Assembly (NCBI GenBank): GCA_048013815.1
Contig: CM106585.1
Coordinates: forward strand, 9,300,001 to 9,364,000
Source of the DNA: Setoptus koraiensis
Taxonomy: Eukaryota > Animalia > Arthropoda
Direction of reading: 5' to 3'
Length of the DNA: 64,000 nt
Made by a program: the position numbers and the translations under genes. The notes beneath the pieces were generated by a model. The model searched no databases. It was not told where the DNA came from and was given only the letters and a program-made list of their open reading frames with translations. Numbering within the stretch: the first letter of the stretch is position 1; each line of letters starts with the position of its first letter. Below, in pieces: positions 14,407 through 24,433 of the stretch.

Positions 14407-15212
14407 TCAATTGATCGAAAATTACGTAAAACTTTCCTACACAGGTAAACAAGTTGGAGAAGATTTGCAAGTCATTGTTCAATTATTTACCTACTATATT
14501 ACCATATATAGATATGCATATTATTTTAATGTCTAGTATTTCAAACAAAAAGAAAATAACAGCGACAGGATAATAATACCAATAATAATAAATTGCTGTG
14601 AGAGCATAGTTTACAATTTTTGGAGCAGACATATAAGTTGTTTCCTTGATCGCATGCAGCTACCGCCAAGTACAAAGACAGACTCATAACCGATGTGTAC
14701 TTAGAAATCATTCAAGTAGTGTCGTCAAGGATTGGGCTGTTCCTAATAACGACCTGACAGAAATCATTTGCACTCTCTCACACTAACACTAACACTCACA
14801 CAAACACACACACACCCTTACATACATAGATATGCGGATATAAATAATTGTTGCTTTTATTCTGGGCTTTTGACAAGTTCTTTTCAGTGAGACCTCATAC
14901 AGTCACCTTCAGACTTTTGAATGTCCATATTGATGATGGCGAAGCTGTTGTTGATAGTATCGGGGTGAAAGTATGTCGAAGTTTGTTGTTGCAGTATCAA
15001 AAGTAATAGAAATGTAGAGGCCGTGGAAAAACACAAAATCTTCTCCATGGAGGTACAATTCTTACCTGTTAGATATCGGCGCACGGCGAAGAACAACCAT
15101 TTGCTTGCGCGGACGAGCCGTCATCACCAGCGGAGGGAGAGGGGTCGTGCCGGTGTGATTTTTTTTTTGTACTTTCCCTTCCCTTTCCCATATCATTGTC
15201 GCTTTCCATTTC

Positions 15213-15818
15213 TCAACCAAGTACGTCTTCAATGAATTGCCAGCGCTTTAGTTTCATATGAACGTCAAACAGTATGTTCAGACTACCACTTTTCTGTTTC
15301 TTTTTCATGAGTTCTGTAATATCTGTGAGGGCGTGTTTCGCTAATTCCGATTTTGATAATTTGAACGGATTCTGCATTCGCATGCGTTGATGAAGTTGAT
15401 ATTTTGGTTGATTAATAAGTAACTTGTAGAACAGCCATCAGTGAGGAATCATGCAGTGATTGACGCAAGTTTTCAATTATACTTACATCTTCTCCAAGTT
15501 CGTCCTGACTCAGTTCTTGCTCACCGTAAGACGATGAATCTCTTTTTAGCTCTGCCGGCGGGTCCTCACCGCAACCACCATAGATGTTGCATAGAGTTCG
15601 CTTCTACATTTAACAATTGTGAGTGCGTTGATAATGTTGACAGTTTGCTTGATTAATAAATAACTTGTAGAGCAGCCATCAGTGAGGTATTATACTGATT
15701 GAAGCAAATATTTAATCATACTTACACTTGCTTGCAAAGGTAGGGCTTGCGAGGTCAACACTGAGCCAACACAAAATGTTGCTATCAAAAGGATTGCGAC
15801 ACCTTTTCTCGGGCCCAT
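15213..15818 (-). CDS. CCAP-like neuropeptide precursor 1, 3 exons (15818-15726, 15603-15487, 15371-15213), 122 aa
   Basis: Two phase-0 GTAAGT..AG introns join into one frame: signal peptide MGPRKGVAILLIATFCVGSVLTSQA, then LPLQAS-KR-TLCNIYGGCGEDPPAEL-KR-DSSSYGEQELSQDELGEDNPFKLSKSELAKHALTDITELMKKKQKSGSLNILFDVHMKLKRWQFIEDVLG*. The C-N-x-x-x-G-C ring after KR matches CCAP (PFCNAFTGC). Not present in the ORF track. Confidence 0.8.
15372..15725 (-). repeat. Pair of homologous introns (15725-15604 and 15486-15372) in the CCAP-like precursor 1 gene
   Basis: A hand alignment gives 87 of 104 positions identical from the GTAAGT donors inward. The acceptors are similar (AATGTAG vs AATGCAG). The flanking exon sequences do not align. 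Confidence 0.9.
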
Positions 15819-17250
15819 CGTATTGTTTTATCGCTAGGTCACGCTAGTTATTTGTGATAGCAACAAATAATATCGTAGATGGATAATCAACTGTTGTCCG
15901 ACAGATGCCAAGAACTAATAGTGGAATGCTGGAGAACTAATTTTCAAGTTTCTTGTTGACACTAATACATGTATACTGTCTTGAAGTGACTTACGCTACA
16001 CCTAGACATGAAACGTAATATATAATTCACACTATCATAATGTTACGTTACTGCATACAACTCGTTTGTTCTCTGTATTGGATAACTCTCAATGTTGTCA
16101 GTTGAAATCGGCGCAATGCTTCAGCCACCTTGTCGGACCCTCAGTTAGATCGTGGTCGCATTTATATTATGCCGATAACAAGCATGCGATCTAATAATGT
16201 TAGGCTATCTGCCTTTCCCATTTCATGTGGTAAGCTCCTCATAGTTGGAGCCCAACAAAAAAGTTGAGCACTGAGCAAGTGGGCCACACTATTTTATTGA
16301 GTAATTATTTCCATATGCGCTAAACTTTTGCATGCCATTGATTGAAACAGCTATTTCCATCTAGTTGAGCGTTTATTTCATTCTCAATCTGAATAATCTC
16401 TTTTACAGTTTGTTTGTCCATCATTGGCGCTCTCCAAATCATTGTCCAGTCCAGTGTGTTAGTGGCTCAGTAAAATTATATGATTTAGTGCTAGTCTCTT
16501 TTTCATTTGGTGATTGCTTTGCTGCGAGCGAGTGGAACAATGGCAGTTGCGTATGGAGAGTAGTAATGAATGAAATTAATATTACCACTGGCAGTTATTT
16601 AATGAACTTTATAATCAATATAAAACAAAAGCACAGTTGGAAGAAACTTATAGAGATTGGTTTAGAGACTGTATTCTTTTAGCCACTCTCACTGGCTTAA
16701 GTATCTCTAACTAAGCCAATTTATGAAAGATGTTACTACTACTAATAGCTGAAATTAGTAAACTTCGGGAACAATTTCTCTCAGTGTGGCATCATGAAGA
16801 CTACATAATCTGAATCAGTGGCCCAATAAATTTCAGTCCTTTTTAGACCACTTTCCGTTTCAATAGCCTCCTGTGACGCACTTGTGAAGCAGATCTTAAC
16901 GAGATTGACATTCTCCCACATCTTATGACTTCGAATAGATTGGGTAGAACAGCTCCCATGATGATCGACTCAGTTGATAATGTCATCCGAGGCCAGATCT
17001 ATCGCCACCTAGCTCACAAAAGAAAATGAATGAGTAATTTAATGAATAGCCCAATATCAGCTAACAGACACAGGCTTCGTCGGAAAGCTTTCTAGTTTTA
17101 GTCTGTTGCGATAGAATTCAAGTTACGGCTGCATTAATTACAACTCACGATCCAGCATTCCGGCAAGAATGGACTGGCTTCACTTTATTTTGTTCGTTCA
17201 AACTGTTTTTGGGTAACAAACAGACTCAAAAACATTGTCCGTTCTCTTGT

Positions 17251-18661
17251 CTATCTCAGGTGCATCATTGTGGAAGTTAACATAAGGCAAACAAACATGC
17301 AGATGAAATTGAAATTAACTGCCGCTGTTGCGGAAGGTGCAGCTCCTGATGTTTGATGCAATGAATAGTGATCTCCAGAAAATTTGTCATTCGTTTGAGC
17401 CACGAGTCTCACAGGTGAGCCAGATGCTGTCTCAATCGGCAATGGTAAAGCGCTTAGTCTAATAGATGTTGCGTTGATAAGCTGTTTCAGATTTGAACTA
17501 ACATTTTCCAAAATGTAAACATTGGCATTACAGAAAATTACATGAGCTATTGGATCCATGTTGTTCTCTGAGTCGATCGAGCTGCTTCCGTCTGCCGATG
17601 GTGCATCCAAACCGACTCCGATAACTGCCCGGTTGTCTACTAGAAATAAGGCCGCTTCTTTGGTGAAGCCGGGTATTTTCAGGTCGGATAAATTTTTAGT
17701 ATCGCTGCCGAAATAATCGCTGGCGCCCTTTGACCAAAATTCGCTAATTCCGGTATATATTAGAACCTGAATAATTGGTGATAATGAGTTATTCGATGCA
17801 TGATTAGAAAAGTTGCAACATGATTTGGGAGTGCCTTTTTTCATTTTATCAATCAACAAGTGACCTACCACTGAATTGTTGGCAATCTTTGACTTGCTCT
17901 TGTTCTCAAATTCCTCCAGGTCTTCTCTTGTGAACTGATACGTTCGATTCCTGTTCAAGATGAGTGGATTTATATCTCAATTAGTGAATGGGGTATGATG
18001 AATAGAGTTAATGAGATAGAGAGGTGCATAAGATATACTTACTTTGTAACCTTGTCACTCAAGTCGATCACGTAGGCAGGAACATTCACCAATCTGTCCA
18101 GCGGTATCTTATCGATAGACCATTTATCTGATAGGGAAGGGTATTAAATACATTTGGTTAGATTAGACAAACATCGCTGAACAAGTATATTGAGGTCAAG
18201 TAATGATAGATGGTGGCTTGGCCAGATACAAACCTTGGGCGAAATGAATGGGTGCATCCATGTGAGTGCCAGAATGGAGATCCATTTCGAGCCGGTCGCT
18301 CTTAACGCTGATATGGTCAGATGGGATAATGATGCATTTTGAGAAGTTTGATCAAGATTGAAAATAGTTAATGTTAGTTAAGTAGAGTATATTCTGGTCG
18401 TGGCACGTGAGTAGAATTGCGTGTCAATACTAACTAGTAGGTTTCGTTCTTGTTGAATGCCTTCGATTTGGGTCCACTTGTTAGGATTCTGTATGATACA
18501 TCTTGCAGCGAAACCCAATGCAAGGTTTCGTTATTGATGGCGTAACTCAATTCAATGAATTCCGGTCCATGATGATGGTGAAAACAGTTGATAACAAGCG
18601 CTAGACTTGCCAATAGCAACAATACTGGCAGGCACATAGTCGTTTTATTGTTGAGTATCAT
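17251..18661 (-). CDS. Cyclase family (PF04199-type; kynurenine formamidase KynB / isatin hydrolase-like) metallohydrolase, signal peptide plus probable GPI signal; 5 exons (18661-18435, 18307-18234, 18127-18043, 17950-17869, 17766-17251), about 327 aa
   Basis: GT-AG introns of 127, 106, 92 and 102 nt join in frame. Motifs: signature HSGTHMDAPIHF, DKIPLDRL, VLIYTG, PGFTKEAA, GVGLDAPSAD, AHVIF...ILENV and ALPLPIETASGSPVRLVA. N-terminal signal MCLPVLLLLASLALVINC and a hydrophobic C-terminal tail. Confidence 0.92.
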
Positions 18662-21600
18662 TTTGTTTATGTTGCGTACTATTGGGAACTTGGATGCTTC
18701 AATTTTAATTAAGTTTGCTTGTAAATAAAATGAGAGTTATGAATTGACAATTTATTTGTTTGATGTGAAGTGTTCGACAATCAGAGTGCTAATGATACTT
18801 CAGACGCAATTACTTGGCTTCATATACGTACTGTCTGGACGTTTGATTGAATTGCTACTGCGGCCAGTTTTCTGCATGTTCCATTACAATGAATCAATGC
18901 TGTGAGAGTGATATGACGATATGACGAAATGTGTTTTAATCATCAAGGCGCAAACTGGGCTTGTCTCAAAACTATGTTGCCTCACACGATTACAACTGCA
19001 ACGAGTTAAGTTGGTTTGCTGTTGGAAACATTGACGACAAACGGACAAACGGATCGCATGTACAAATATCAGTCTGTATATCAGTGATGAACAGACTCTA
19101 TGATGCTAGCTAATAATCACTTTTGACGCCCATATATATTCTCTCGTCGCGTCTGTATTTGTTTGTTTATTTGTATTTCGTTTTGGAGCACATTCGTCTT
19201 TGGGGAAAGCTCTAAAATATGATGCCATTACAATGAGAATTTGGCGCTAGTCTTGTGCTTCTCAACTGAACGATTGTTCACAGTGTGTCTGTCTGTAAAC
19301 TTTAGATGATGTCAGCGAGTTGACATTTGAGTGATAAAGAAGATGAAGAAGAGTGAGCATCTCTCATGTGTATAGTTCATCATGTGTATGAGCCCAGCCA
19401 GTGCCCAATTCGACACTGCACACACTGGCATGCAAATTATCACCATAATGATAAAATCAAAAGTTTTCATTTGCGAATAAGAGACCAGTGTCAAATGTTC
19501 GCAACAAACTAATCGATAGAGAGATTATCTGGTGCATAGGCCAAATTCCAGACAATCGAAAGAACACCAATTGAGGCAGAGATCTCTAGTGGCCAATTGA
19601 GCTGGCTGCTAGCTTTTGTTAGATCAAGAGTGTCGGTCGGTGATTGAGTGAATCAACAGTCGAGTGTAGTATGTTTTACACATTTCCAGTCAACCTTTCA
19701 AAATCGTGCCGATCGCCAGCTAGAGAGACTGGGCGAAAAACCAAAATTTTTGTTTATTTAACAAAGTCGTTGCGGATTTACAAAGTATCACGCCTGTGTC
19801 CCGCTCGATGCAGATAAATACATCGTTGTGCGTAATGTACAAAGACAAAATAAATTCATCACTAGCTGAATAAAGATCATGATTTTGAATCATTCTCAAG
19901 TCAATCATTCCAGAGCTGTTTTCAATATGAGAGAGGGCCCTTAAAGTTCAAATGCCACAGCTACAGTCTTGGGGCGCGATGCTGCTGTAAAAACAATGTT
20001 TGCATTGTTGTTACTATCACATAGCGCTGGATTCACATAATAATAACAATGTTGAGTTATGTAATGTGTCTAGGATACTGTGTGATACCAAGTGCTCATC
20101 TGATTTTACGCAATTCGCGAATTGCGTAAAGTCCGCAAGGGTCCGCTTCTTGCTTTCATTGTGATGGCCCAGTTGAAGGCGCGTTATTGGACCATAGCCT
20201 GCGCCGCCTGATCAACCGTGCCAATTATACATTTAACGAGACACCGCAAACTAAAATTGCTTGCATTTGAGGCCCTGCAGATGCCCCTTGCGGATCTTTT
20301 TCACACTTGCGACGAAAGTGTGAAAATATCGAAGCTAACTCATCACAGTTATTTTTTTATCCTTTAACTTTTCACTTTTACTTGCTGGTTTTGCTTTGTG
20401 GATACAATGAAACGGATCATCGAGCGTGAATGAATGATGAAGGCAATTTTACATTGTGTGCTTTATCCTACTCGAGGAAGATAACCGTTGGGTCAACGAC
20501 CCAACAAGCAGCCTCTAACGAGACTACAAAGTGTGAGAGACTAACCCTAGCTTAGTAATTGAAGCCTAAGAGAAGACATATTGTCATAATGTAAAACAAC
20601 GATAAATAAGAGAATAAGAGACCAATGCAAAGACAATTCCCGTAGAAATGATTGGATAAGTTCGTCAGTTTCTAATTGGACGTAACATCAACATTGGTGT
20701 CTGGTGTTAGCTAATGTTGTTGACTAATTGCGATGACTGAACGTCAATTGTCACCAACTAATTGTGTCTATTCAAAGTTATACTAAACAAGTCTTGACTA
20801 TCTGAGCGCTACTAACTCGCTATCATGATGGGCTCATGTGGCGAAATTTGCCTATCCACGTACACCATTAAACGATTACCACAAAAACTTGGTGTCATCG
20901 TTTCGACTAATGAATCGTCAATGAAATGACACTATTGACGATCTTTGATCGGCGCATCCGGTTACAACTCAATGGCGCTCCTTGTTTATCAAGCTAAAAA
21001 TTGAATGCTAAATAATGTTGAAAGAGGGACGAAAATTGACCGTATTCTGAGTGCATATTGAGGAAATTTTTATCGCAGTCATAATTAATTATCTAGGTGA
21101 ATGCAAGATCAAACTGCAAATCACCTGATAAAAACAGATTATCGGACTATAGACAAGTTGATCAAACTAAATTGGAAATTCTATTGAATTTTATTGATCC
21201 GCAAACTGACGTGCTACGATCAGAGCGCATTCAAAGTTTTTCGATTAGAATCAACGCAATTATTGGCTAGCGGTTCGGTCATGAATAATTATGGCGAGAC
21301 GTGCTTTATCTGTGAGAGGGGCCTCCTATACCTTTGTTCCACTTGATGTATTGTAGATGTTGTTTTGTCCGTGTATACAATGTTGTAACAATGTTTACAT
21401 GTACAAATGCATATTTATATAAAATATCTAAATATGTATATGATGGAATAACTGTGGCTGAAAGAATGTTAGTTAGATAAGGAATTCTCGCTACAGTAAC
21501 AATATATTTGCATAGCAGCAGTGGACAGGGGACGATTAACGCCACACAGCGCCATTGTTTTTGTTTGTTGTTGGTCTGGCTGGCCCCTTTACGCAGCTTA

Positions 21601-22598
21601 TCAGAGCTTAGTTTCTTCTGTGTGATCATTGTGAGCCATCTTGTACTGTATTCACTGCGAGCATATATTGTAGTGCCGATTGTTTGGATGGGCTGCTCTG
21701 ATAGTGAGAGAAACATTATTTAGTAGTAGTAGTAGTATACGGTAAGCGATAAAGATTATCGCTTGTTCGTAATTCACCTGTATTCGACGGATCACAGCGA
21801 CGATAACGCGAATATAAGTGATAAATAGTGTGCTGCGTCTAGCCAACTACAACAGTGATTTTGGGATACTCAAGTTTGGGACTACATTGATATATGAGGA
21901 AGTGGCCCATGATTCGAATGCCACCCCCGTAACTGGGGTGTTGATGGTTTATCTAGACCAATGGTGTTGGCTCAAAATGTCAATATATGTAAATGTAGAT
22001 GATCGACGTCTAGGTAATAGGCGACACTCTTGGTCAGGTGTTGTTATCTGCTGGGTAACATAGTGCACAAGTGCGAGTGTAGGTGGCTTTTGTACTGTAT
22101 GTGAGTGTGATTTGCATAAATCACAGACACACGTGGATCAGTAATCTTGGATCAGTCTAGACGAAACAAAACAAACAACAAAGAATGAGCTACCTCAAAC
22201 AATGACGCCACAGTTACATAGCGACTTGCCATTCAATTGTGCCTCATTTTTGTATTTAGATGTGATTGAATAATGCATAATTCTCAATACTTGCATACAC
22301 TTTGGATGCTTAATTTACTGGTAGCCAGATAGACGGATATTTGGGTCATGTGGCGACGACGCGACCCATTTAGTGCGTGATGGTGTCGTGATGAATGGTG
22401 TCGTGGTTGAACGGATTTTGGTCAGTTGAACAATCGCAATCAAACAGTCAGCAACATTTTATTTTACTATTGAGTTATTTATTTATCAAATAAATATTCA
22501 TAAATAAATAAACGACAAGTATAGTGTTTTAAGTGAGTGAGCCTATTGGAAATACAACCAGAGTTATACAACAAAACCCACCGTTTTCTGCCTAGTCA

Positions 22599-23273
22599 AT
22601 GCCAGTTATTGTGAAAGAACACAAAATGCTCTCAATCAGTTTTCTACTAATTAGCGGCATTATTATAATGCGAACAAACCACATCTATTGTGATGATACG
22701 GCGAATCGCGGCCAGATCACCGATCTGGCGGCCATCAAACGGGGCCCCGGGTTGTCACAGCAGAAGCAGCAACAACAACAGCAACAACCACAAAAGCAAA
22801 CACCTTCAGCGACATTAAGCGACAAAAGAGCTGCCAACAGTGAATCAACAATAAAAGTGACCACTGACAGTGACCGCTTGCAAAACTTACTAAAAAGACG
22901 CTCCAAGAGGCCATTTTGTAATATTTATATGGGTTGTACGTCGCACATAACAGGCTCACAACACGACAATAGCAATAATAATAATGATAATAATAATAAG
23001 ATAAATAATATGGACAAAAAAGTGTCCTCTACTTTTGAGGATGTCATACAAGACATCATATGGTCGTATCCCAGCAAACATTCGTCGCATCATCGCTCGG
23101 TACAATCGCTGCCAACGGTGGTGACACAACAGCAAGTTCCTTCGTATCGTCAGCAGTTGGGCGCTAAACAACTGGTAGACTGGGTATTGAGTAGAAGTAG
23201 CAATAATGATTATAATATCCTCAGAGACAGCGATGTCATAAATGTAATCGAGGCCGGGGTTGAGTTTGATTAG
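22599..23273 (+). CDS. CCAP-like neuropeptide precursor 2, single ORF of 224 aa (215 aa from Met at 22626)
   Basis: Hydrophobic signal MLSISFLLISGIIIMRTNHIYC, several KR sites, and KRRSKR-PFCNIYMGC at 22911-22937. PFCN and GC match CCAP exactly. Confidence 0.7.
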   Translation: MPVIVKEHKMLSISFLLISGIIIMRTNHIYCDDTANRGQITDLAAIKRGPGLSQQKQQQQQQQPQKQTPSATLSDKRAANSESTIKVTTDSDRLQNLLKRRSKRPFCNIYMGCTSHITGSQHDNSNNNNDNNNKINNMDKKVSSTFEDVIQDIIWSYPSKHSSHHRSVQSLPTVVTQQQVPSYRQQLGAKQLVDWVLSRSSNNDYNILRDSDVINVIEAGVEFD

Positions 23274-23480
23274 GGGCCAGTGTCTAATGGATAGTGCGTG
23301 TCAGCAGTGGGCAGTACAACACTTGCGAGATCTGTGGTGCGGACAACAACCTCGACTACATCAAAAGTATGGATATCCTGCGACAATTACAGCCAACGAA
23401 TGGTTGTTTCCGGTGTCGTCGTTGTTGTTTATGTTGGTGGTGGCGGCGGTGTTGGTGGCGGTGGCGCGGCCGGTGTTGCG

Positions 23481-24433
23481 TCAATAGTAGTATGTATTAT
23501 ATCGTCTATATCCTGGCGGTAGTAGTAGATTTAAAGTTAGTTTAGCACAATATTACAAGTGCAAACAATTTGTATGCAAACATGTTACAGCATAAAGTAG
23601 CGTAATAATCATTTATTAAATGTAATAACAATAACAATCAATAGCAGTCATATTGATTATAAAGAGAGGCAGCAAATGAGATAATTAACATGGCTCACGG
23701 TGATTCACGGGCCCCAGCGCATACTTACCGATGGGCAAAATATAGGGTGTCAAAATAATGGGTCTTGGCGGCAGCGGCGGCGGCAGCGGGGCTGGCGAGG
23801 GCGGCGGCGCCGCAAACACAAGCGCCGCCGACCGGCTCGACAAATATCGTTTCTCATGGTGGCTTGCGTCGGCTATTGGCCCATTGAGCCACTTAATAGG
23901 ATTGCGGATGTTGCCACCAGGATAGAATGGTTGCGGCCTGGCGTTGGGCAGTTGCTATCGGATTGGATTGATTAATTGGATTGGGTTAATTAATCGGATT
24001 GGATTAATTGATTGGATTAATCAATTGAGTGCAATTAATTACACGACGCGTGGGCGTAGCTTACCTTTCTGCAATGGTAAATGAGACAAGTGGCCTGTCT
24101 GACGCTCAGTAGTGAGGCTGTTAATTCCTTCATTCTCGTGTAGCCTGTGCAACCGATCACTGTCAACGGAAACTCTTGTCTATCACACAAGACACATTGA
24201 CTGGACAATTTAATGGGATCGCTGCTTGCAATGCATAACCTTACCACTTTTGGATTGTAGTTGTGTGAATTGTAGCAAAATGATAGTTGTAAAAATAACA
24301 CTGAAACTGATACAAACGCTAATAAACAAGTAATAAATAATTGTCCTGAATAACTGCTGTAATTGTTGACTGTGGTTGTTGGTGTTGGTGTTGCCGTTGT
24401 TGGTGTGGCCGTTGATTGAGGGGACATGTTCAT
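23481..24433 (-). CDS. Orphan secreted or membrane Cys-rich and Pro-rich precursor-like protein, 3 exons (24433-24065, 23954-23729, 23512-23481), 208 aa
   Basis: Donors AAG|GTAAGC (24064) and G|GTAAGT (23728) and acceptors GATAG (23955) and GCCAG (23513, CTAAC branch) join three open segments in phase. The product has a hydrophobic stretch LFITCLLAFVSVSVLFLQLSF, a 6-Cys domain ending CRK, then QLPNARPQPFYPGG...HHEKR, APPPSPAPLPPPLPPRP and GYRRYNTYYY*. I recognise no family. Confidence 0.55.

Follow-up and report, generated by a model that had tools for sequence, protein, structure and literature searches.

The CCAP-like genes and their ring motif

Here we examine a 64,000-nucleotide stretch of eukaryotic DNA from Setoptus koraiensis (assembly GCA_048013815.1, contig CM106585.1, hereafter C1, positions 9300001–9364000; we refer to the whole stretch as the window), in which two genes, A (15213–15818, minus strand) and B (22599–23273, plus strand), encode putative secreted precursors with a cysteine ring resembling that of the arthropod neuropeptide CCAP. 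A paralogue of A, here called A', lies outside the window, with its gene span at C1:9253752–9254418 and its ring site at C1:9253960, 61 kb upstream of A. All three rings are preceded by a lysine–arginine (KR) site, share the core CNIY and lack the amidation signal that follows the ring in CCAP precursors. The features of the two window genes are as follows; coordinates without a contig prefix are those of the window.

15726–15818, minus strand: gene A exon 1, with the start codon, a predicted signal peptide made up of charged MGPRKG, a hydrophobic stretch and the cleavage motif SQA, and then a propeptide of six residues
15604–15725, minus strand: gene A intron 1 (GTAAGT...TAG), 84% identical to intron 2
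15487–15603, minus strand: gene A exon 2, with KR at its very start, then TLCNIYGGC-GEDPP, and a second KR 17 residues past the first
15571–15591, minus strand: gene A ring codons (CNIYGGC), inside a 37-nt run identical to A'
15372–15486, minus strand: gene A intron 2 (GTAAGT...CAG), a copy of intron 1
15213–15371, minus strand: gene A exon 3 and stop codon; the tail aligns with A' exon 3 only around LAKHA, and the second A' ring is absent
22599–23273, plus strand: gene B, a single-exon open reading frame of 224 codons, with a predicted signal peptide, three KR-flanked spacers, then the CCAP-like ring, and a low-complexity tail of 111 residues
22905–22937, plus strand: KR-PFCNIYMGC of gene B (ring codons 22917–22937), where the entire Pfam CCAP match sits
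14820–16066, no strand assigned: duplicated block containing gene A, 1.25 kb, with an inverted copy at C1:9253494–9254717 (A') that is 74–78% identical (BLAST)

Gene A comprises three exons with two GTAAGT donors, TAG and CAG acceptors and junctions that are all in phase 0. Gene B is preceded by an in-frame TAG two codons 5' of its ATG, and its signal-like N-terminus probably begins at Met10 (22626). By direct reading of the sequence, the N-termini of A and B both look like secretory signal peptides, and the three KR-ended spacers of B give it what reads as a prohormone layout. The B ring is directly preceded by KRRSKR, and the first dibasic pair in its tail comes 27 residues after the ring. 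Past the ring, B continues TSHITG and both A and A' continue GEDPP, without the glycine and basic residues of an amidation site. The C-terminus of gene A (15213–15245, minus strand) consists of KR and a 9-residue peptide whose glycine is the last residue before the stop codon; taken alone, this terminal glycine would be a C-terminal amidation signal, and it is not conserved in A'.

The ring motif is specific to these genes. In a six-frame scan of the window, CN[AIVL][FYW]xGC preceded by KR occurs exactly twice, as KR-TLCNIYGGC (15571–15591, minus strand) and KR-PFCNIYMGC (22917–22937, plus strand), so that the pair of divergent CCAP-like genes about 7 kb apart put forward in the preliminary description, with a common CNIY core and no amidation site in either, is borne out (start codons 6.8 kb apart). 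Across the genome as searched (48.7 Mb in two contigs), KR-xx-CN-x-[F/Y]-x-GC has three matches, in A, B and A', all within 69 kb, against none in a reversed control. The looser pattern KR-xx-C-x4-GC shows no enrichment (26 genome matches against 36 in the control), and the signal is therefore specific to A, A' and B. The bare string CNIYxGC has five exact matches in the genome; the two that fall outside the three genes lack KR and have stop codons 2 to 8 codons from the ring.

No canonical CCAP gene accompanies them. The preliminary description had called for a search for PFCNAFTGC, and neither a genome scan with the Pfam CCAP model nor three degenerate patterns revealed such a gene in the two contigs, the Pfam scan giving one unrelated match of 15 bits. 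Allowing at most one mismatch, CNAFTGC had one match genome-wide, a CNSFTGC that is out of context and has a stop codon 4 codons before it, and a pattern scan of the genome for a ring followed by glycine and two basic residues (CNx..GC-G-basic-basic) yielded nothing. We also considered, and rejected, a hidden exon that would restore amidation. The plausible donor sites are T|GTACGT in B, overlapping the last cysteine codon, and G|GTGAGG in A, overlapping the next glycine codon; neither has a fitting acceptor with Gly-basic-basic within 15–20 kb, the sole acceptor match of this kind, 10 kb off, being about what chance would give. With no fitting downstream acceptor, the missing amidation site is therefore real.

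As to whether CNIY-type peptides had already been described, a point raised in the preliminary description, no searchable paper contains the strings PFCNIY or CNIYGGC, although such a search would overlook sequences that appear solely in figures. A literature search found no neuropeptide survey of eriophyoids.

Likeness to CCAP precursors

When gene B was compared with 24,736 Pfam families, its best family was CCAP (PF11105; E = 0.0024), at 18.2 bits against a family gathering cut-off of 27 bits. What B has in common with CCAP precursors is a predicted signal peptide, KR-ended spacers, a KR directly before the peptide and a Cys-x5-Cys ring with asparagine after the first cysteine and glycine before the second; B also keeps the Pro-Phe that precedes the ring. 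Set against canonical KR-PFCNAFTGC, it thus shares KR, P, F, C, N, G and C, and its change of F to Y is conservative. Identity to the nonapeptide PFCNAFTGC is 6/9 for B (PFCNIYMGC) and 4/9 for A (TLCNIYGGC), B departing from it at three positions (A to I, F to Y, T to M) and A at five.

The differences from CCAP precursors lie in processing and in number. Without a glycine and dibasic signal after the ring, the products of A, A' and B would be neither amidated nor released at the C-terminus, and amidation has been regarded as part of CCAP identity (PMC6660194). There are, moreover, three to four paralogues here. Arthropods usually have a single CCAP gene, and PFCNAFTGC is invariant in nearly all of them.

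Two other systems offer partial parallels. Lophotrochozoan CCAP-type precursors, conoCAP among them, carry several rings per precursor, with both Cys-x4-Cys and Cys-x5-Cys spacing, and they provide a precedent for recruitment of a CCAP-type peptide into secretion; A' likewise has two rings, TICNIYGGC and VLCNQWGC. ConoCAP-type peptides differ in being flanked by cleavage sites and amidated, and they belong to unrelated taxa. Plant-feeding mites, for their part, have lineage-specific families of small secreted, salivary effector-like proteins, and the genes described here resemble these in being short, in having a predicted signal peptide and no homologues, and in showing local duplication and fast-changing C-terminal parts. 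Unlike such families, A, A' and B have a strictly conserved dibasic site and a hormone-like ring.

Duplication and family history

A and A' diverge by about 16% at the nucleotide level, and open reading frames and splice sites are intact in both. Over 51 alignable codons, the ratio of nonsynonymous to synonymous divergence (dN/dS) is about 0.37, with dS = 0.29, and the 37 nt encoding CNIYGGCGEDPP are identical in the two genes. Exon 3 of A' (C1:9254155–9254418, plus strand) holds a second ring, VLCNQWGC, with four residues between the cysteines; rings of this spacing are familiar from mollusc CCAP-type peptides. Exon 3 cannot be aligned between the two genes, and A has lost the second ring, though it retains 'PF' at that place. 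The 3' flank of A (14820–15093) is 78% identical to that of A', as high as the exons, with the unalignable exon 3 lying between; a conserved flank beside an unalignable coding exon is an unusual pattern for a duplicated gene.

The introns have a history of their own. The two introns of A are 84% alike, each is 83% identical to its A' counterpart, and all four are 79–84% alike, which fits an old tandem duplication of a putative unit of intron plus ring exon. Either the intron and gene duplications were nearly simultaneous, or the introns have been kept alike by conversion or constraint.

A and B share the motif alone, and the remaining protein does not align. Within the motif, five of the eight conserved codons differ synonymously between A and B, which indicates an old split and purifying selection on K-R-x-x-C-N-I-Y-x-G-C; selection on the ring is thus suggested by very few codons. 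A duplication after the peptide had already diverged, as first proposed in the preliminary description, is supported by the derived I and Y that A and B share, together with their saturated synonymous differences.

The family extends beyond the 9-kb cluster to which that description confined it, since in addition to A', 61 kb upstream, there is a fourth, partial copy of A at C1:10733715–10733979 (minus strand), 1.4 Mb away. This copy, at 72% identity, runs from exon 1 through intron 1 into the beginning of exon 2; it has no KR..C....GC motif and may be either a pseudogene or a divergent family member. The window and 20 kb around A' hold no further family members.

Homologue searches

Searches for relatives in other organisms were blank. 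Gene B had no homologue in a word search of 5.8 billion proteins, and phmmer against 1.84 billion representatives returned a single low-complexity match. A word search with A' exon 3 found nothing, the ESM Atlas gave nothing above 0.82, and a motif scan of metagenomes produced 70 stretches, all of them out-of-frame chance matches in microbial sequence. These results carry little weight, because the closest relatives of the neighbouring cyclase-family gene (see below) in the collection are only 63% identical, and a fast-evolving precursor would be unrecognisable at such a distance.

Neighbouring genes

Two further genes or gene candidates had been grouped with A and B.

17251–18661, minus strand: multi-exon, secreted-looking cyclase-family (kynurenine-formamidase-like) hydrolase, between A and B
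23729–24433, minus strand: third orphan, an open reading frame at 24035–24433 with a possible second exon containing EKR; a hypothetical proline-rich spliced model

The hydrolase gene is head-to-head with B and in tandem with A. It belongs to PF04199 by a profile score above the cut-off (E = 2.7e-9, 37.8 bits; a second match, E = 6.3e-6 and 26.9 bits, covers the exon with HSGTHMDAPIH) and by the metal-binding motif HxGTHxDxPxH, present as HSGTHMDAPIH; 23 homologues carry the same domain. It has an N-terminal signal-like segment and a hydrophobic C-terminus. The third orphan exists as an open reading frame for which a spliced model with an EKR site can be drawn; it has no match among Pfam families, and we saw no relation to A or B. 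We rejected the functional unit of peptide genes, cyclase gene and third reading frame that the preliminary description had envisaged, because nothing ties its members together: a link between the hydrolase and the peptide genes is unsupported, the hydrolase being an ordinary neighbour, and there is equally no support for counting the third orphan as a member.

Candidate receptors

A 7tm_1 scan of the genome gave 100 exon matches to G-protein-coupled receptors (GPCRs). Thirty-three exons covering transmembrane segments 1 and 2 (TM1–TM2) were read, and by this reading appear to be of amine, LGR, allatotropin/orexin, RYamide/NPY, allatostatin-A, allatostatin-C, tachykinin and pyrokinin types; two doubtful exons have NPY1R/GHSR and KISS1R as their best PDB matches. 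Two orexin/allatotropin-receptor-like genes, at C2:12164975–12181625 and C1:14271948–14280901 (both minus strand; C2 is the second contig), are 68% identical in their TM1–TM2 exon, and the former has an intron of roughly 12 kb after that exon. Many of the GPCR exons in this genome lie in open frames that exceed 1000 codons.

A probable diverged, non-amidated CCAP family and its alternatives

We consider it probable, at roughly 60%, that A, A' and B form a CCAP-derived family of non-amidated peptides that was duplicated after the ring had changed. We infer that B, the sole CCAP-type gene in the two contigs, is a strongly diverged orthologue of the CCAP precursor, in which PFCNAFTGC would have become PFCNIYMGC and the Gly-dibasic signal for amidation and cleavage would have been lost. 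A and A' would be later partial duplicates, in which a short segment (KR and the altered ring) was copied and acquired a new exon for the signal peptide as well as a tail that changes rapidly. The products of all three genes would enter the secretory pathway, where a proprotein convertase could cut after KR and leave the ring at a new N-terminus; the two cysteines would then close a disulfide ring of 7 residues, and the mature peptide would be C-terminally extended and non-amidated. If selection keeps K-R-x-x-C-N-I-Y-x-G-C, as we propose, then the ring would still bind a partner; an altered receptor of the CCAP/NPS type is the likeliest, a new target the other option. The co-evolved receptor or host-directed secretion that the preliminary description had raised was pure conjecture, and we leave it as such.

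This reading leans on the short motif, on two contigs in which no canonical gene was found, and on selection read from very few codons, and several observations weigh against it. CCAP ancestry comes down solely to a motif of 11–17 residues: the match of B falls below the Pfam cut-off and is confined to 17 residues (a 36-residue piece with the ring scores 17.6 bits by itself, and the flanks score nothing), and when the A and A' proteins were searched exon by exon, exon 2 of neither matched the CCAP model. With no homologue of B, orthology to CCAP is not demonstrable by tree or synteny, and further scaffolds may exist beyond the two contigs searched. Exons 1 and 2 of A and A' are 84–86% identical, against 81–85% for introns and flanks, so that apart from the ring the evidence for constraint on these two genes is weak. 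Finally, none of the 33 TM1–TM2 exons read is NPSR-, CCAPR- or vasopressin-like, with about a dozen GPCR genes falling outside the reading.

Several of these points would also be expected if the genes were decaying relics, that is, if CCAP signalling had been lost in a miniaturised, heartless mite and B, A and A' were drifting leftovers without ligand function whose frames are open by luck. Every copy has lost the amidation signal that canonical CCAP requires; the motif itself is lost in the fourth; the exons of A and A' are no better kept than their introns; and no CCAPR-like exon is among those read. Components of ecdysis signal reception are, in addition, missing from over half of the species of Sarcoptiformes and Mesostigmata in a 2026 survey, CCAP-R being a case on which reports conflict (PMC13449613). 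Yet the amino acids of the ring are kept between A and B across saturated synonymous divergence, and three copies retain intact open reading frames, predicted signal peptides and consensus splice sites; the chance survival of a 224-codon reading frame is itself improbable at roughly 40% GC. We regard decay as unlikely.

We are somewhat more doubtful still of an independent origin, in which small secreted proteins with a cysteine ring, forming a family confined to this lineage, would resemble CCAP by convergence or coincidence. The restriction of the similarity to 11–17 residues, the failure of A and A' alone to match the CCAP model, the lack of homologues in any search made and the fast-evolving tails are all consistent with it. 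By our own estimate, however, KR-PF-CN-x-[FY]-x-GC is expected by chance about 1e-4 times per genome, and here the motif sits in a precursor with a prohormone layout, and nothing else in the genome, which otherwise lacks CCAP, is CCAP-like.

Least probable, in our view, is that CCAP-derived peptides, especially those of the lineage of A, A' and the fourth copy, are released by glands, salivary or otherwise, to act beyond the mite itself, on a host plant for instance. In its favour, the genes resemble effector families in their small size, predicted secretion, restriction to one lineage, local duplication and rapidly changing tails; the loss of amidation and of a downstream cleavage site would suit a longer secreted protein; and cone snails have recruited CCAP into venom. 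Against it, B retains the layout of a classical neuropeptide precursor and we know of no plant target for such a ring.

Implications

CCAP is among the most conserved of arthropod neuropeptides and belongs to the toolkit for ecdysis and heart control. A genome in which every CCAP-like gene is one of several paralogues, with an altered ring and without an amidation signal, is a natural experiment in how a ligand–receptor pair changes or dissolves during extreme miniaturisation. The widest version of the idea, that a near-invariant arthropod hormone was freed from its canonical form and multiplied into non-amidated ring peptides, some of them recruited outside neuro-endocrine signalling, for instance into a gland product that affects the host plant, strikes us as a long shot. 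The finding nonetheless bears on the conflicting reports of CCAP receptors in mites (PMC13449613). If the peptides are expressed and active, they would suggest that the receptor has been re-tuned or that a new target exists; if they are not, the family may provide a stepwise record of the decay of a core hormone gene.

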